Shown: positions 1-11,427 of the stretch, in pieces | Numbering within the stretch: position 1 is the first letter of the stretch | Layout of the letters: every line of letters begins with the position of its first letter | NCBI GenBank assembly: GCA_965644295.1 | Contig: CBFFRP010000150.1 | Span: 310,001 to 374,000 of the forward strand | Length of the DNA stretch: 64,000 bases | Origin: Paraphysomonas bandaiensis | Lineage: Eukaryota; Protista; Chrysophyceae | Reading direction: 5' to 3' | The notes under the pieces: model-generated | Told to the model about the DNA's origin: nothing | Databases searched by the model: none | The model's input: only the letters and a program-made list of their open reading frames with translations | Made by a program: the position numbers and the translations under genes

Positions 1-2853
1 GACTGGGCTGGATGGTCATTACAACCTCACCATCGTCATCATCCTCTTCCCCTTCAACCGCGACCTCTTCTACGAATGTCACCACAAAGTCCGAAAATGG
101 CTTCATCAGTCCATACTTACGACCTAGAGAAGGGTCGGGCCTTGCCTCATCCTCATCATACGAGTCTTCCTCATCTTCAGTAGGCTCGGCATCTTGATCA
201 ACATAAAACGTTTCAGCATAAAACTTGTGCTCCTTTTCAATAGGATCTGGAGTGGTAGGTACATTTCTAGACTCTTTGTCGGCATCTTCTGGGTCTACAT
301 TCTCAGCAGGTGCACTTTCTCCATTATCGTCACCCGTGTCGGCGGCGTGCTCCTCGTCGTCAGCATTGTCTTCTTTGGTCTCAACAGCGGGTTCTGGTTT
401 GGGATGCTCGAGATATTTCTTATTGAGTCGTTTATTCTGCTCATGTAATCTGGTTTGTTCATCAAGAATTCTATGTGGTGTAATCGGTTCCATTTCAAAC
501 ATTTCACAAAGAACACCCATATGGTCTACATAGTCGTCAGCGAGGCTAATCGGATGTTTATCTGCCAGAAAACATGCCTCTCCATGGTATACGCGATAGC
601 TTTCCAGAATTTCAGCTAGTTTGGCCAGCACCAAGTCAAAATTCTTTTGAAGGTCAGCCATATCGGCACTGCGACGAAGGGCTCGACAAGCCTCTTCAAA
701 CTCTGCCTCTCGGTCTTCCTTCGCTAGACGGTTCTCCTCCTTGAAGTCCCAGAGCGCATCAAGAGATTGCTCGTCTAAGTCGTTTTGATGCTTCTTGTGA
801 TCTTCCACGATTTTAGCAATTTTTATGTAGAAGGCAGTAATCTTATTCGAACTAAAAGACAGTGACCCCGTTTGTAGCTCAAGAAATGTGGCTATTGCAT
901 CAATGAGGCGCTTGTAGCGAGAATCCAACCTATCTAATTCGTAGTCACATTCATCACGAATCACCACGTCAACGTAATCATTGCACGTACGCTGCTGTCG
1001 GACAGCATCAAGGCAACGACAACACTCCTGATATATACAAACATTACCCAGTCTAATATGATATATATATACCGGTTTACCTCTTTGTAATTGTCTGGTA
1101 TGTCTGATCCATAGTACAACATACCAAGTACTTTTGACCATTGCTTAACAAGGAGAGGGTCTGCACATGAATTTTTCTCCATTGCATCTGCTGTTGCCTG
1201 TCGCATCGATCTGGCGGTGCGCCTTGTAGACTTGGCAGTCGATATATCGGCCGGCGACTTTGTACCTAAACCTGTCTCATCATACTCCGCAAGTCGCTGT
1301 AACTCTTTTTCTATTCCCTCCGCGCAGATAGATAGATTGTTCTGAAAAACATAGGGCATCTTCTCAAAGCTACTCATTTCTTTCAAATCAGGTAGAAGGC
1401 TGGCAAGGATGCCCGCAACGTCAGCACGAGGCACAGTCTTGACTTTAGTGAGTAAAGCTCGCACGTTGTCCAGGCGAGGTAGGCGCCCGCGCTCATTTAG
1501 AACTTCCTTTAGAGTAAACCCACACACAACCACCTCCAGACGACTCTGGACACTTGCTACGAGATTCTCGTATACGATATTATCCGAACAAATATCGCTT
1601 GCAATTGAAGCGATTTCGGCCTTAAGCCCCCCTCCAAGACGCCACAGTTCGCTCAGCTCTGGATCTCCTACAGCAGTACGTAGGTTGGCGGCAATTTCAT
1701 GTAATGGTGGTTCGTCGTGTAAAGCTCCATATACGTGCAACTCCTTTCGTAGTTCTTCCATACGAGTCTCAGCAATGCCTCTGAGGTTTGCTCGTAGCTG
1801 AGACAATCCGTTGTAACATTCTTGTGTGGCATTGAGTTCCTCCTCATTGAGAGCAACAAGAGCCTGTTGAACCCGTGCCACTTCTTCGCTCTTGATCGTG
1901 TCCGCATTTAGAGCTGCCAAATCCTCCAGGGCCTTTTCCCGACATGCGTGACGCTCTAATTGATATTGCCGAACTTTGGACATAAATTGCTGTCTATCAG
2001 ACGGCTCTGTGTAATCTTTACTCTGAATATCATAATGAAAGATACGTATCGCCTTCTGGTGACGTAGAAGACGCCATTGCTTTTTGGCTACTTCCCATTT
2101 GTGAAGAGTGCACACTTCAACCTCCACTTGTTTCGTACGCATTACCCCTAGCAGTTCTGCATGGGATTTACGGTTTGTCGTAAGAACAGTGTTGAGATCA
2201 AACGCCTCGGCCTCTACTATGTGCTCAATATCATCCGGAAGTTTATGAGCGATGGCTATCAAGTTATCTACCAACAATTTTATCTCGGTTCCTACTCTAT
2301 CAGCACGGCCACACTCTAGACTCTCTAATGTTGAGCCGAACGACTCGATTGTAGATGATCGTTTCGAGATAACACTTTTGAGGTTATCTAGTGCAGTATC
2401 TAAATCTTCACTCGATTGTTCTACTAAATGATCGTCCTGGGCCAACAAATCACACGCAGCTTTCAGCTCATCGTCGATTTTCTCCAAATCCTCACGAACC
2501 GCTCTAGATGATTTTAATACCTCCACTTCAATATTTTCGGCAACATCTTCAAGGGTTTTAGCGAATGTATCCAGTGCTTTAATATGGCGGTCCTTTTTGG
2601 CAATCTTCTGCTTCTCAATACCTTGAAAGGTTCGAGTCTTATCGAACATCGGTACCTCCAAATTAAGAACAGTGCGAACCTCATCCTCACCATCAGTGAT
2701 TGGAGGTTGAGGAGGACGTACTGTTGATTTCTTTGAGTCAGGAGAATTCCCTTTATTCAATGTAGGTGATTTGGCGTAAAGGGCATTCTTTTGAGTGCGA
2801 GCTATTTCTAACTTTTCAACTAAAGCAGATTCAGCCTTAGCGATTCCACTCAT
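1..2853 (-). CDS. CCDC180: Coiled-coil domain-containing protein 180-like (DUF4455; flagellar CFAP76 family), 3' end runs off the window
   Basis: The 630-aa ORF contains the DUF4455-like segment ERADRVGTEIKLLVDNLIAIAHKLPDDIEHIVEAEA...NRKSHAEL. Removing a GT-AG intron at 1028-1080 restores the frame (YKE|ECCRCLDAVRQQ...RRSADMADLQKNF...YHGEACFLADKHP), which continues toward position 1. Confidence 0.75.
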
Positions 2854-3638
2854 CTTCCCGCCGTAATGGCACCTACACTGAAGTTAATGAATCCTGATAT
2901 AAGGGTATGGTAAATAACAACAGCAAGATGTAGGGAAGTGTTATAGTGAGTATATCTCGATATATATTAAAGTCTATGTGTACATGCCTGCATCAGTGCA
3001 GTGCAGTGCAGTGCTTGTATATATACGCACATACATACATATATATACACATACAGTTATGGCAGTTTCAAAAACCAGACTACATCAACTGTATATTACT
3101 GTATACAAGTGTATTGATATACTGTACAGTTGTATTCTGCATAGAAAAATTATTTAGCCCGCACCGCAGGTGCGGGATCCCGCACCCTTGTTTTTACACA
3201 AAGGCCGCACAGCAAGTGCGCCCATCGAGTGATCCAATCAGCAGAGTGCATCATAGCATAGTGCATCATATCACATGCATCGAGTATATGTATATAGTAA
3301 TATGACGAGGCAGCCATATGCAGCAGATACACGTTAATGAGTGCTTGAATGATAGGTGATAACATGTTGCTACCATCTTATTTCATGAAACTGTGAGATG
3401 AGATATGCAGTTACTGGACGAGGTTTATAAGGCTGTATGGAGAGGAACTGTGAAGGGCTGTATATTATGGTATGAAGTGATTTGATATGGATATCAATGA
3501 TTGAATTCCAGGTGGGAGCATCATGCTCCCATCATCCTATTTAAAGTGTCAGGTATGTAGAGAGATGAGAAGTGGTACATTTGAAGGAATAGAAGGCTGT
3601 ATATCATGCATGCACTATGTTGTGTGATGGTATATGAT

Positions 3639-4572
3639 ATGCTGAATGTTGTCATGGTTTATTATGCTGTTGTAGGCGCAATGACGTTTATACTTACCGG
3701 TGCAAGAGGGATGCCTAAGCGACACAAGCGCCCGGCTGCCCCTGTACCATCTTGCAGTGAATATGTGTCATGTTGTGTAAGGGTATGCAGTATGGCTGTA
3801 TGTGATAAGAATTCTGAACGGTGTGGAATAATAAAATGCTGAAGGCTGTGATGGTTTATTATGCTGTTGTAGGCGCAATGACGTTTATACTTACCGGTGC
3901 AAGAGGGATGCCTAAGCGACACAAGCGCCCGGCTGCCCCTGTTCCATCTTGCAGTGAATATGTGTCATGTTGTGTAAGGGTATGCAGTATGGCTGTATGT
4001 GATAAGAATTCTGAACGGTGTGGAATAATAAAATGCTGAACGCTGTGATGGTTGATTATACTGTTGTATGCTCTGTAAATAATGATACGATGTATTCCAA
4101 TTACTAATGAATCATTAATTATAAGGGTACAGTATAAAAAGTTGATGGAGTGGTTATAAATGAATACATATAGGCATTCTACAGATTACTAACATCAGAC
4201 TGTGTCGAATAATAAAATGCTGCACGCTGTAATGGTTGATTATACTGTTGTATGCTCTGTAAATAATGATACGATGTATTCCAATTACTAATGAATCATT
4301 AATTATAAGGGTACATTATAAAAAGTTGATGGAGTGGTTATAAATGAATACATATAGGCATTCTACAGATTACTAACATCAGACTGTGTCGAATAATAAA
4401 ATGCTGAACGCTGTAATGGTTGATTATACTGTTGTATGCTCTGTAAATAATGATACGATGTATTCCAATTACTAATGAATCATTAATTATAAGGGTACAT
4501 TATAAAAAGTTGATGGAGTGGTTATAAATGAATACATATATTGGCATTCTACAGATTACTAACATCAGACTG
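3639..4572. repeat. Composite tandem array: 2 x 197-bp units plus ~3 x 184-bp units sharing a ~46-nt head
   Basis: The head GAATAATAAAATGCTGMASGCTGTRATGGTTKATTATRCTGTTGTA occurs at 3826, 4023, 4207 and 4391, with a partial copy at ~3639. Spacings are 197, 197, 184 and 184. Unit bodies are near-identical within each class. Confidence 0.95.
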
Positions 4573-4649
4573 AAGTTTCCTTTTCTTTGTCCTTGGAATA
4601 ATGTTACCATCACTGTCCCTTCGTGCACTCATTGCATCATATATACTGT

Positions 4650-6843
4650 TTATGTATTTCTTAGAGGCTTTTTTTTGGGGTGAAACTTGTCGTAATTTTC
4701 CTGACCAAATAAATCAACAATAACACGCAATTCAACCTTTTCAGCTATGCATTTTAAATTACTCTTCCATTCTCTGTACGAAGTAGACTGACTTGCCATA
4801 CAGGGTTTCGGCTCATCAAGAAAACGTTTCTCGTCATCGTACAATAGGCCGAGTCCTTTAGTCAATACTCGATTTAGTTTTTTCTGTTTGTTGACGTTGT
4901 CTACCATAGGGTATCTCTTTCCTACAATTTCATGTAATTCATAATCAAAATAGTCAATAATAACTGTTGATAAGCATAATTTTTCGAGAGTTTTATATTG
5001 AATGAAGGATATATGGGGCATGCGCTGCATGTTAACTCTCATGTATTGAAAAACATTTGTCGTAGTAGTGGATGGACCTTTGGAAGGTCCTTCAGTAATC
5101 GGAGGCAAGACTGTAGGCGATGTAGGTATCCGTGATACAGTCTCTGAAGTTGGTATAGTGGTATCCGTTGGAATATTTTTCAAGCCTTCTAGAATATCAG
5201 CCACAGCAGTGTCTAATTTCTTGTGCAGATCAGCTATTGCAATAGTTTGGGTGTCACACTTTCTATGAAGCTGTTGTATTTGGTCTCGAAGAATGCGATT
5301 CTCCTGGTAAATTTCGTCTACATTTCTTGTGTCTACAAAATTAAGGCGAAGCCATTCCTCCTCAATCGCAGCACTCCATTGCATTATGTCATTCCAAGTG
5401 AAATGGTGGCGCATCATGTTGTGCTTGAATTTACAAACCACTGCATGTTGTGCCGTGTATTTAGAAACAAATGATGGTAACCTCATAAGGAATGTAGCAA
5501 ACACAGAGAGTTTAAATTGAAATAGACAGCCATCAACCCCAAATTCTGGGTAAGTGAGTGGATAACATGTTTCGATTAACGCCATCACTTGTTCTCGGTT
5601 TCCATTGTTGATAAATACACACTCGGGTGGATATATCTTATTCCTGGGATTAGAGTAGCCACTTAAAATTTTTCCACCCACAGCAATAGTGACATCTAGT
5701 CCCATGATATACTCAAAAATGCTGCACTCTCCGGAGAAGTCCCATCCTCCACGCATAATCGCATGGAAGATGCCGCCTGACTGACTACTGGCTATGTCAG
5801 TTGCAGCCCCGACTCTAAGACCCTTGCCTGTTGTTTCCTTTGTAACTCCAGGTACCTTCCCGATCATTTGTTTTAGTAGCTTAGAAACAAATTGACTAGC
5901 GCTTGATGTAGTCAATGCTAGATCTGGAAAGACGAAGTCACCGTTGAGATCTGCTGCAGTACAGGACATCCAGTACATTGAATAAGCGAAGAAAACACAA
6001 GTCTCTAGACAAGAGTAGTCGGGAAAAAAGTTCATTGTTTTGATAGAAGCCACCTTCAATTCTGTCCAATCAAACGTTAAGTATCCATCGCAGTGCCACA
6101 TTGCATTATTATACGAAGCAAACATTGCTTCAGACACCCGACCAACAGCAGCAAACGTGAAAACCAAATAGAGATTGTACAATGAATACTTCTTCACTTC
6201 TAAATAAAGTTTATTAGCATACAGTAAATCATAGATATGTGAAGTATGTCCACTTACCGGAGAAATCAGATGCCCGATGTATAATGTATTCACCTATGCG
6301 CTTCATTAGTTCTTTCCCCACTGGACTTGTTTTCTCTGATATACGCACTCCTTGTGCGATACACCGCTTGATAATATGCTTTGATACTGCCGCTCTCACA
6401 TCTTTGTACCACAGCTCATTGGAGCTGCTTAATAACTCATTTCTTTTAAATCGCTTCGTCAGCGCAGTCTTCGTGTCTGACAAATACTGCCAAGCAGTAC
6501 CTAGGGTCAAAGGCTTCTTCGTTGTTCCATGGACGGCGTGATCGATCAAAAAGCCACCGAAACATTGAAATAGTTCTACATTTATATCACTGTCTATGAG
6601 TTCCTTATACCTCTTCTTCCCGTCGAACCGCATCTCCAAGTACTTCGCAAACTGAGCTAACGCAGAGGAGTTACGATTTTTGGTTTCCCCATCACCGACT
6701 TTTCTAATGCCCCCTGTGGTAGTTGATTCCGTGGTAGTTGATTCCGTGGTAGTTGATTCCGTGGTAGTTGATTCCGTGGTAGTTGATTCCATGCTACTAT
6801 GATATGTTCTCGCTGTTATTATGTTCTGTATGTATGATACCAT
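4650..6843 (-). CDS. Tyrosine recombinase (Crypton-like), two exons
   Basis: ORFs 6229-6873 and 4650-6293 join in frame via intron 6200-6257 (GTAAGT...GCTAAT...TTTAG; SDFS-E-VKKY). Catalytic motifs occur in order: AVGRVSE (R), TGKGLRVGAA (HxxR position), RGGW (H/W), SIFEY (Tyr nucleophile). A coiled coil follows. The start ATG is 6843 or 6792. Confidence 0.85.
6716..6790 (-). repeat. Coding minisatellite, 5 x 15 bp encoding (ESTTT)5 at the recombinase N-terminus
   Basis: GTGGTAGTTGATTCC is repeated five times perfectly. Confidence 0.95.
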
Positions 6844-7359
6844 GCTGTGATGAGAGAGCTCCTCCTTCAACACCCACCTCCCTGGATCTATTACTCACCA
6901 GCAACACCATACATACCACTGGTCACTCATCATCACCACTTATATAGTTCCACACCATTATGGTGCGGGCTTGAGTACGGTACCTTCCACATTTTACAGA
7001 AAATACGGTTGATTGGAATGCTGTACTTGAATGGAATATGTACTTGAATAGTTAAGTTATATGCAGCAGTACATGATACCTCAGTCAGTGTTCCCCACTA
7101 TGACGTAGGAGTTCGCAGGACAATACACTGGTATCCCACACACTGCCTATTGGAGTGTTCTATGGCATAGTTCTATAGGCATATTGCTGTGTATATACAT
7201 GTGCTATAGATATTCCGCACATTGACATACAAGCCAACGGGCACATATACACACATATACATACATACACAGAGGACAGAAGAGGTAAGACAATATAACA
7301 CAAGAGTCTCTCATATCAATCCATCATATAGTGAACACATCATTCCATACATATCAATC

Positions 7360-8839
7360 ATGTTATTAGCACGATTTGCTGCATTAGAACAAGAAGCTAA
7401 AGAAGAGATTGAAAAGAAAAAACAAGAACAACAATCTTCAGTATCGTCTACAGATAAATCAGATGATGTGAAGTGGTTATCGAAAGAAGATCATACTAAA
7501 GTATCACCATCTAAATTAATTCGTTTACGTACAACTGCTATTAAGAAAGTTGATAAATCAGATTTAATTTGGGCGATTTGTTCGAATCTTAAAGGCGGCA
7601 AGAGTTATGTGTTCGGTATGTGATGTTTTATATTATGTATATATATTTGATCACCCAGAGCTAATACGATATGTCTACTACTTTGTTTTAGCGCGGAAAT
7701 GTGAACATCATGAAGCTGCGACTGATCCCAACATTGAGTGGCCTATTCCCGTTGACCTCACGCTAGTTGAATATATTACAATGCCAAGGACGTTCCCTCA
7801 GTTTGCCGCACTTAGAGAAGACGAATTTTTTCCTTTCAATGCCTCGAAATTGGACAGTAGTGATCAGTGGGATCCGTACTGGTGCGACCATATGGTTGAT
7901 GTACTCAGGAGGCGATACACTAAGTCGGAGTCGGAGCGTATTTACAATCATTGCAAGGCCACTGCTGATGAATTTCTCAGGTATGACATTATAGCATAGT
8001 CACATGATGCAAAGGGTCTGTACGTGCAATGCACACGCGCTTGGTTATGGTCCTTGTATCTCTCTAGGTTGGCGCTGGCGAAGGAGCGAGAGGAAAAGGA
8101 GGCTGCATTGGAGACAGTAGATATGACGACCGTGCCCAATGAAACTGAGTTACAGGATGGCACTGTAGATATTACTCAATTTGCACTGGCTTCATCTAAT
8201 CACGGCTGTCAAGTACTCAAGCCAGGTGATTGGCTGGGGTACGAAGACAAGGTAAGCTCTTCCGTCCAAGGATTATGACTTTTGTCCAATTTGTGTCGCG
8301 TCCATATGTTAGTCATCAACCTCGTTAGTGTGTTCTTTTTCTCCACTATCTATATACTATTCACGGGGTTGTACGTAGTTGTCAACAACTAGCAAGAAGA
8401 GTAGGATTGTTTGTGTAAATAAAGCATCAAAGACTCCTATCGAGCTGGAAAATGGAGACTTTCTTTATCGGGATGATCTTGTGCGGAAGCTTGAGACGGA
8501 TGACGAAGGTGTCGGGCAGGCCACGAAATATACTGTCACACAAGTTCTTAAGGAATTTGAGTTCCAGGATGGGCGAATTATCGCAGCACAGGTCTGTAGT
8601 AATCCTAATTCACTTAGATACACATTGCGCTTGCCTTGTTCCTGTTTGTGTAGCACTTGTTTACAATATAACACGTTGCTGTGATGCATTCTCGATGATG
8701 TGGCTTATGGTATTAATTTGAGCAGGGTGCTCAGCAGGAGATTGGCAGAAAAACGAGGAAACGTTTGGACAAAATTACTGACGAATGCGGCATAGCGTTG
8801 AATAGCCGGTCATATAAGAGATTGAGAAACAAGAAATAG
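7360..8839 (+). CDS. Five-exon hypothetical protein with a PWWP/Tudor-like segment
   Basis: GT-AG introns 7616-7691, 7981-8067, 8252-8378 and 8592-8725 join the ORF fragments in frame. The segment DLIWAIC...YVFARKC...LVEYIT...FFPF resembles a PWWP beta-barrel. The C-terminus is basic. Confidence 0.65.
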
Positions 8840-9204
8840 TCGATTCGTGTTTGAGTTACCCAGTACATGTAGATACGTAGATACTTACTTTGGCGTGCTA
8901 TTGAGTCGGCGTTTGGTTTGAATAATGCTCATCTTGCTGCTTACGATATTATGTTGCTATTCGATATGGTATAACGTTGTTTGAAATCTTTTTGTTATGT
9001 GTCTACGGAACGATTTGTACAACACTCAAAACTTATATTCTGAAAGTGTAGACGTTGCTAGCATTGGTATGTATGTATGGCATCCGTTCCCAATTCAGAT
9101 GTATTTACCGCACTATGAAATTTTTGTGTATTTGAAAAACTACTGCAAAGGGTATGGTGGTGCTTTAGAACGCACTAAAAGACTACGATAAGACACACAC
9201 TCAG

Positions 9205-9528: not shown

Positions 9529-11427
9529 CTATATAACAATTGATAACTTCTTAGGAGAAGATTTTTCATTATTTTCACCAGCATGGCTCTCCTTCTGCGT
9601 AGACTGCACGATTGGTTTCGGGTCACATGTGTCAAAATTTCGATTAGCAGCAGTAAGCCCATCGAACTCTTTCAGTCTCTTGTACTGACTACTCAAGCTG
9701 GTTGCTTTCTCTAAATTGCTTGAAAGTTTCTTAGCGTGTGCAGCAAAAAGCGCAGCCATGTGATCATCATTCGGATCTAACTCGGCAGGCTTCTTTGCGT
9801 TCTTATGGCTCTGCATGCTTGAAGCAGGCTGAGACACCCTGGTACGTATAGAGCCCTGTTGGGAAGACTGACATGAAGTTGTAGAAGCACCCCCTCGGAT
9901 CCTTTGCGCTCCCCAGTCCTTTTCTACCTTGGCCCCTCCTTCTGTTGCAGCAGTACCGGTCGGTATAACCGGTTTCAGTCGTACTCCTGCTCGCTGCAGG
10001 CGACCCGAGTAGTATTTGCCGGTCATAGTACTTCCGACACCGCGGCCAAGCAATCGTTGAGTTCCAGCGAGGGGCTGAAGACGGTAGGGAAGTGCATCTT
10101 CCCTGTTTTCTTCTACTTGTACAAGTTGTTTAGAACGTCGAGATGATTGCCCTATACTCGGAGCAGACTTTGAGCCCAGTAGATTAGCGGGCTTGAGTCT
10201 TCCTCTTGGACCTATCCCACTGGCACTCCGCAGGAGTTTACTATCTCTATCACTGTTGTTTCCAACTGAACTAGTAACATCGGACACTGTCCGGTCCACA
10301 CGCTGTAGGCCACTCAGTCTATCTCGAGTTACCTTGCGGGCTGGTTTCAATCCCTCTGCGCCAATACCAGTACGACGAACCGGGACCAATGCTCCACGTG
10401 TGTTGGACCCAGATACACCGGTAACAGTTGTACTGGTCTTCTTCTTCATACGGGATGTTTTGGTAATTGCTTTAGACTTCGCCTTGCTACTGCGCATAGA
10501 AGTATCGGTATCCGATTTCTTCGTTTTCTTTTTACGGGCAGGTTTACCAGTAGCTGTCTTTGACGCCACTTTTTTCACCCGACCCTCTGCCCTCCGCTCC
10601 GCACACTGCTCCGAAAATTTCTTTGTTGGTTTAGGAGGAGACAACGGTAGGGCATTGCGAATGAGTTCCTCTTGGTGGTCAGTCATATCTTCCTTCTCGA
10701 GGGCCTGGCGCAGGTGCTCTCGCGTGCGTGCCGAATACATACAGGTAGGTGAGTAGGCTTCTGTCGTACCTCTTTTTGGTGAACGTATAGGCGATTGAAC
10801 ATTAATTCGTACATCCATATAAGGGCGCTTGTCATTCTCCTGGCCAAGACCAGTAAGGAAGAAAGAATCAGGCTCTTCTTCACAGTCTTGTGGATTAGTT
10901 GACTTAGTCGAATTTTTCCTGGGCGAAGTGATGGGTGAAACTCTATCATCTGGTGATGACTTCTGTCGTATAGGAGAGTGCATCCTTTCTACTTTCCGCT
11001 GAAACTTTGGTTGCTTGGTTTTTACGCGGCGAACAGGAGGCTTATCTACCCGCTTATGTACATTCTTACTAACAGAAGACTCGTGGCGACCTTTCAGTGG
11101 ATCTGCCAATCGCTCCAGTGTTTTCTTCGCAAGTACTTTTGGTTTCGCCGGTTGACAATTATATCGTTGCATTATTACACCATAAGCAGCACTCTCTACA
11201 ACTTTGTTATGTTGATAGAAGGGGTCCTATATAGGGGCATGATATCACTATGATGTACTTTTCAATTAATAACAGCATACCTTCATTTTCTTTGCCTTCA
11301 CAAGAGCATCATTCTCCCTCTGTAAGTCATTCAACAAGCTTCCTAAATTTAATCCATCCCATAAATCGGATATATCTTCAGATATGGGTTGATCTGCAGC
11401 AGCTGATTTGTTCTCTACTTCCAACAT
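9529..11427 (-). CDS. Basic (K/R/S-rich), low-complexity hypothetical protein, two exons
   Basis: Exon 11281-11427 splices via GT-AG intron 11227-11280 to the 547-aa ORF (KKMK|DPFYQHNK...GVIMQRYN). Confidence 0.7.

Follow-up and report, generated by a model that had tools for sequence, protein, structure and literature searches.

The locus studied here raises the question of where a mobile element ends and its host begins. The window, that is, the whole analysed stretch of 64,000 nucleotides from the chrysophyte Paraphysomonas bandaiensis, contains a tyrosine recombinase (YR) gene with a tandem array and palindromes close by, and a five-exon gene placed head-to-head with it. An earlier note on this DNA had read positions 3057-8839 as a possible composite mobile unit made up of the recombinase, the array, the palindromes and the neighbouring gene, taken for a chromatin 'reader', and had proposed that the partner protein or RNAs from the array guide recombination. 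Few eukaryotic transposons are as poorly understood as Cryptons, the ends of which are difficult to define and the copy numbers of which are usually tiny. To our knowledge, Crypton activity has been observed in Chlamydomonas alone. Cryptons have been defined by a YR together with terminal direct repeats of 4-6 bp, an end signature recognised by Goodwin as well as by Kojima and Jurka (PMC3212892; PMC13465315). We conclude that the window very probably holds a Crypton-type DNA transposon, one of multiple copies, with a single YR gene of the Cre/Flp fold, located in the divergent intergenic region between two host genes. The element represents a well-preserved example of a class already known, rather than a new composite system.

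The element covers positions 3143-7003 (3,861 bp, minus strand), as judged by a step in depth at its edges, by contig breaks and by unrelated flanks. Contigs of four runs (X3, X5, X6 and X7) were aligned to window positions 2900-8899 and their depths were summed. Summed contig depth, which is not a copy number, was 1,700-29,600 inside 3100-7099 in the DNA run X3 versus 16-49 outside, an unmistakable contrast, and X5 and X6 showed a similar step. Contig pieces begin at 3143/3144, and loose ends extend before 3143, where there is one, and behind 7000-7003, where there are several distinct ones. Both ends of the element carry the same direct repeat, TTTTCT on the minus strand (AGAAAA on the plus strand). 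The 5' repeat at 6998-7003 was seen with four independent flanks: when the junctions were aligned, four unrelated flanks each joined TTTTCT followed by GTAAAATG. Among the contigs from other sources, L001, L003 and L010/L011 have unrelated 5' flanks, with L010 and L011 sharing one flank. The match of the ocean-metagenome contigs L003, L010 and L011 to the window breaks at 7003-7005, and L001 corresponds to the window from 7003 down to 4383, after which the divergence is complete. Four additional 5'-end flanks were seen as loose ends among the mapped contigs of the four runs. The 3' repeat at 3143-3148, with a seventh T at 3149, was seen with three independent flanks: those of the window and of the ocean-metagenome contig L009 differ after ...CTAAATAA-TTTTTCT, the match of L009 to the window breaking at 3142/3143, and the third is the X7 loose end before 3143. 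Since the flanks are unrelated right beyond the shared TTTTCT ends, we place the limits of the element at 3143 and 7003, each end carrying one copy of a 6-bp direct repeat. Both ends of one single copy were seen together in the window copy only, and neither an empty site nor a 7003-to-3143 circle or tandem joint was seen among the joints listed. The span 3057-8839 had been considered as one unit, with a reference to the TATGG-type ends of stramenopile CryptonS elements; neither fits this family: the repeat stops at 3143 and 7003, and TATGG/TTATGG at 3058/6959 and TATGGCA at 3058/7161 lie off these positions, at which homology between copies also stops. A target microsatellite was also considered, formed by the (CATA)n tracts (3019-3061 and 7242-7271), but these lie away from the junction, 82 bp outside one end and 239 bp outside the other.

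The five-exon gene (7360-8839, plus strand) lies outside the element and begins 357 bp beyond its end. Its exons (7360-7615, 7692-7980, 8068-8251, 8379-8591 and 8726, or 8723, to 8839) encode 351-352 amino acids. An RNA contig of 1,273 nt contains the joints of the introns 7616-7691, 7981-8067 and 8252-8378, so that the gene is expressed and three of its four introns are confirmed, with the fourth modelled only. The head-to-head arrangement described in the earlier note is therefore real, and the closeness of the two genes, both of which are transcribed, is what speaks for a composite unit. The partner gene nevertheless does not travel with the recombinase: beyond the TTTTCT at 7003, the 5' flanks of the other copies are unrelated to window 7004 onward and none holds a counterpart of the gene. 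The partner region has single-copy depth, whereas the element is roughly 50-900 times deeper (summed contig depth, not a copy count), and the mRNA contig of the gene begins at about 7275, outside the element. Nor is there support so far for the PWWP-like, chromatin-reader fold proposed for its product: no exon had a Pfam match even at E<=1-10, the candidate domains being split by introns, and both the scan of JGI loci and a fragment-sized search for protein homologues were blank. Taking these results together, we regard the composite reading as highly improbable. Copies without the partner gene had been named beforehand as the outcome that would reduce the locus to an ordinary Crypton sitting in a bidirectional promoter, and such copies are what we found.

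Its position outside the element, its single-copy depth and the dissimilar flanks of the other copies make the five-exon gene a host gene whose upstream region took the insertion. On the other side of the element, and likewise outside it, lies a CCDC180-like, single-copy host gene (961-2853, minus strand; DUF4455, Pfam PF14643, E 1.3e-43). The two divergent start codons would be about 645 bp apart in the absence of the element. A scan for bacterial promoters and terminators gave matches at chance level and is not applicable to this DNA. For the annotation of the locus, this means that a false 'novel system' is removed and that the neighbour becomes an ordinary host gene, upstream of which a transposon has inserted.

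The recombinase gene is the only convincing open reading frame of the element. It consists of exon 1 (6258-6792, minus strand), which includes a coding repeat, (TESTT)5, at 6716-6790, a spliceosomal GT..AG intron of 58 nt (6200-6257) and exon 2 (4650-6199), which encodes the catalytic domain, a coiled coil and a C-terminal region that is truncated in the window copy. The product has 694 amino acids. In a word-index search, its sole match was P0001, a protein of 742 amino acids that is 99% identical to the window recombinase and has three TESTT units in place of five. P0001 is encoded on L001, a JGI contig of 2,670 nt, which we take to be a cDNA because the intron is absent. Splicing of the gene, already described in the earlier note along with its R, RGGW and Tyr motifs, is proven by this cDNA and by the RNA joint 6199->6258. 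The element is transcribed and its recombinase gene is well expressed.

DNA copies (L003 and X5 record 11) still have the intron, whereas RNA contigs do not, and this difference argues for spread as DNA. This bears on the idea that the locus is a fragment of a YR retroelement of the DIRS/Ngaro type, or of a larger cargo element. Such elements likewise encode YRs and have repeats of their own, either internal or terminal (PMC13465315). The repeat unit found here is just 3.86 kb long with sharp ends, and we found neither a reverse transcriptase nor RNase H in the element, the other open reading frames of which had no Pfam match. A repeat search detected no long terminal repeats, split direct repeats or inverted terminal repeats. 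An origin from a retroelement or from a larger cargo element is accordingly very hard to reconcile with the data, and we return to a DNA transposon.

The distinct flanks and the 50- to 900-fold excess of summed depth show that the element is multi-copy and sits at different loci. Its middle part (4900-6099) has a summed depth 5-10 times below that of its ends, which fits the internal-deletion derivatives that were actually found: L003 and L004 lack window positions 4825-6022, and deletion joints at 4910/4912->6219 were detected in X3 and X5. Such derivatives are present in ocean metagenomes and fall into several independent deletion classes. The identity of the copies, their distinct flanks and the mRNA suggest that the family is active. 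A single-locus host gene domesticated from a Crypton recombinase, as for Ndc10/Gcr1 or the DUF3504 genes, might also keep an intron and be well expressed, and the neighbours of the protein in a language-model atlas include NDC10_II/GCR1_C and DUF3504 clusters. Many copies with differing flanks and shared exact termini, and the existence of deletion derivatives, are not what a domesticated gene predicts. The catalytic residues are also kept here, whereas domesticated Crypton-derived forms lose them (PMC3212892). We therefore see very little chance that the gene has been domesticated. With exact ends, apparently many near-identical copies, deletion derivatives, a spliced mRNA and presence in ocean metagenomes, the TTTTCT family would make a convenient model, from a marine protist, for studying the biochemistry of Cryptons.

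An exhaustive HMMER search returned 560 relatives of the recombinase at E<=1e-3, the best non-self match being 39% identical; none was found on a viral contig. The window protein has the motifs R199, R328-G-G-W331 and Y342, and its catalytic positions are R199, K227, R307, W331 and Y342. In an alignment of 60 sequences, from which all conservation counts were taken, Arg I, a Glu and the beta-hairpin Lys are conserved throughout (60/60 each), Arg II in 59/60 and the Tyr in 58/60, and the Trp/His III position is occupied by 57 W and three H. The His-II position is variable (H in 20, T in 19 and K in 15 sequences); the window protein has Lys (K304) where the canonical R-H-R-Y tetrad has His. No significant Pfam match was obtained for the recombinase and ten relatives, the sub-threshold matches having E values of 0.025-0.09; among 60 members, two relatives reached Phage_integrase and none matched GCR1_C, NDC10_II or DUF3504. 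A sequence search of the PDB with the recombinase gave coiled-coil noise only, plus Cre at E 1.2. The AlphaFold model of residues 45-480 (pLDDT 93.1, pTM 0.89) had Flp, Cre, Ndc10, lambda Int and XerH as its top Foldseek matches (probability 0.95-1.00), with TM scores for Flp/Cre of 0.54-0.63 by target. The model of the C-terminal domain (pLDDT 71) had no fold match.

The window protein thus has the same predicted two-domain fold as Cre and Flp, and we take its catalytic-region motif ..LRVGAA..(20 aa)..GGW..(10 aa)..Y to correspond to HSARVGAA...GGW...Y of Cre. It differs from these enzymes in its low identity (about 13%), in the extra coiled coil and C-terminal region and in the Lys at the His-II position, and the crossover shows no evident lox/FRT-like site (13-bp inverted arms, 6-8 bp spacer). 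Within the Cryptons, to which the catalytic residues, the YR fold, the 6-bp terminal direct repeats in the absence of TIRs or LTRs, the lack of a reverse transcriptase and the multiple loci assign the element, it is closest in design to the CryptonS elements of oomycetes and Phaeodactylum (PMC3212892). Both have a single YR of about 700 amino acids without GCR1_C, a C-terminal region with a motif common to relatives, and terminal direct repeats of 5-6 bp but no TIR or LTR. In the language-model atlas, the clusters nearest to the window protein, which adjoins these as well as the Crypton-derived families, consist of oomycete and diatom proteins; this proximity is a lead only and not a phylogeny. 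Unlike most, although not all, CryptonS elements, which end in TATGG, the element described here ends in TTTTCT, and it has a large internal tandem array and subterminal palindromes. Most Cryptons have been reported to be very low-copy, whereas abundance is apparently high here and deletion derivatives are many. The latter are internally deleted and keep both ends (L003, L004; joints 4910->6219), as do the non-autonomous CryptonI-1N1_RPro and the medaka Crypton-1N1 (PMC3212892), but they come from a marine protist and ocean metagenomes and represent several independent deletion classes.

A mechanism for the insertion can be proposed by analogy with the model of Goodwin, which was confirmed for CryptonF-1_cRei, the first Crypton seen transposing. 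This element is active in Chlamydomonas; it has CACCG at its end and CAYCG as its target, and inserts preferentially into intergenic DNA close to genes (bioRxiv 10.1101/2022.05.23.493040). CryptonF-1_cRei belongs to another Crypton group and host, and transposition was observed there and is inferred here; the two have in common a short end motif that matches the target (TTTTCT in our case) and a gene-proximal intergenic insertion. In such a model, the recombinase would exchange strands between two TTTTCT copies, one at an end of the element, which is probably an excised circle at this stage, and a matching one in the target. The strand exchange would leave TTTTCT at both ends of the element. 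The insertion that gave rise to the window copy went into the divergent intergenic region of about 645 bp between the CCDC180-like gene and the five-exon gene.

The palindromes noted earlier on both sides of the gene are present just inside the ends defined here. At the 5' end, the palindrome CCGCACCA-TAA-TGGTGTGG (6949-6968) is located 35 nt from the terminus and is identical in L001 and L003. At the 3' end, a triple CCCGCACC motif (3156-3187), consisting of a palindrome and an extra half-site, is located 13 nt from the terminus; contigs of three other runs cover it with no differing letter listed, and an exact scan of JGI metagenomes for it gave 0 matches. Both sites can fold into an 8-bp stem with a 3-nt loop. 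CCGCACC occurs seven times in the window versus 2.1 expected, four of the seven being at 3159-3186 and 6962-6968, and CCRCACC, with 7 of its 15 occurrences in the window inside the element, is about 16-fold enriched there. If proteins bind near the ends to mark them, the CC(G/A)CACC palindromes are the likeliest sites.

The five-unit array 3' of the gene was likewise detected as described. It is made up of 197-bp units (2.2 copies at 3639-4068, score 811; as two units, 3634-4027, minus strand), which were found also in L001 and L009, and three 184-bp units (4018-4572, score 1064; as units, 4015-4572, minus strand), in each of which the last eight codons and the stop of the intact open reading frame are repeated; the two kinds of unit have about 50 nt in common. 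The array (2x197 + 3x184 bp) is placed in the 3' region of the recombinase gene and covered by RNA contigs. As both recur in other copies, array and palindromes are parts of the mobile element that carries the recombinase gene, as the earlier note had suggested. The array would have arisen by a tandem duplication beginning within the last eight codons, after which the number of units varied between copies. Because this number drifts between near-identical copies, the array appears to be an internal minisatellite of the transcribed 3' region, and probably a neutral one.

A refinement of this main reading would be that the array and the palindromes are not neutral and control recombination, whether by offering binding sites of an arm-type or iteron-like kind or by giving rise to small RNAs. 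The enrichment of CCRCACC, which also occurs at the boundaries of the 197-bp units at 3820 and 4017, points in this direction, as does the retention of the array in other copies and its transcription. One to three 184-bp units per copy among near-identical copies is, however, the pattern of a drifting minisatellite, the motif in the 184-bp units is degenerate, and in the related element L005 just a 30-bp repeat (2.2 copies) follows the stop codon. The array has no Rfam match, and no indication of RNA guidance from it was found here; the 197-bp unit (ATACTTACCGG...), considered as U1-snRNA-like, had no Rfam match at E<=1 and only chance low-complexity matches to mir-297. We thus consider such a role of these repeats unlikely. 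In its most specific form, the palindromes and the motif-bearing array units might act as accessory binding sites, much as the arm-type sites do for lambda integrase, and might assemble a higher-order complex at TTTTCT that sets the direction or frequency of recombination. This is a quite unlikely elaboration, and we know of no such control architecture described for any eukaryotic Crypton.

Lastly, the window copy differs from other copies at a homopolymer in exon 2 (4669-4676, minus strand), which reads as 8 T in the window versus 9 in L001, X5, X6 and X7. The open reading frame stops at 4650 in place of 4549 as a consequence. The 9-A frame adds a net 37 amino acids, ends in the stretch PRTKKRKL and stops at 4549 within the first 184-bp unit; the tail that the window copy lacks aligns to a ..VGS.Y.. 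motif common to distant relatives. Judged from these sequence comparisons, the window copy has lost a conserved, NLS-like C-terminal tail by a frameshift. It is probably not autonomous and would depend on intact copies, which are those seen as mRNA. In X3, most of the depth carries the 8-nt form of the homopolymer.

The recombinase gene of the element carries a run of eight T residues at window positions 4669-4676, which shifts the reading frame and truncates the protein C-terminally. In the DNA run X3, which carries the same organism label as the window, the intact nine-T form accounts for only about 2.5% of the summed contig depth, a measure that is not equivalent to copy number. The RNA run and the DNA of two other organisms contain solely the intact form at this position. 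The frameshifted form may represent a subfamily that has been amplified in the host of the window and is mobilised in trans.

The copies also differ at the N-terminus of the recombinase, where a 15-bp coding repeat encoding the motif TESTT is present in five units in the window (6716-6790) as compared to three in the cDNA, and the corresponding region of L003, another contig with a copy of the element, is 45 bp shorter. This repeat is a variable minisatellite within the coding sequence. At window position 5271, a shared foreign sequence is joined to the element in the metagenome contigs L002 (1-227) and L009 (1-348) and in a loose end of run X6; the junction belongs either to a copy that recurs in truncated or rearranged form, or to DNA inserted into the element.

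The intron-less cDNA contig L001, derived from another copy, begins 116 nt beyond the 5' end of the element (L001 1-116), and hence transcription of this copy seems to start in, or to pass through, the flanking host DNA. Microsatellites resembling (CATA)n/(TATG)n are found on either side of the insertion in the window (3019-3061 and 7242-7271), at distances of 82 and 239 bp, and were for this reason rejected as the junction of the element family. Further along, a low-complexity Ser/Lys/Arg-rich ORF of 547 aa (9529-11172, minus strand) has no match in Pfam.

The 3' non-coding region of the element contains a perfect palindrome with 8-bp arms, GGGAGCAT-C-ATGCTCCC (window 3514-3530). Within the 197-bp unit, a GC-rich core of 40 nt (3693-3732), for which Rfam gave no match, recurs in contigs from two other runs, whose loose ends lie before 3693 and behind 3732/3734. 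Long, differing sequence adjoins the core on both sides in these contigs, which points to a captured fragment or to a related family of repeats.

A distant relative on contig L005 is encoded by an intron-less recombinase gene (1136-3349, 737 aa) with a 30-bp tandem repeat of 2.2 units directly behind its stop codon (3357-3422). An identical recombinase is found in three contigs, all with an end at L005 position 3688; on L005, its gene is adjoined by a Ty3/gypsy-type reverse transcriptase-integrase ORF (5694-9191).
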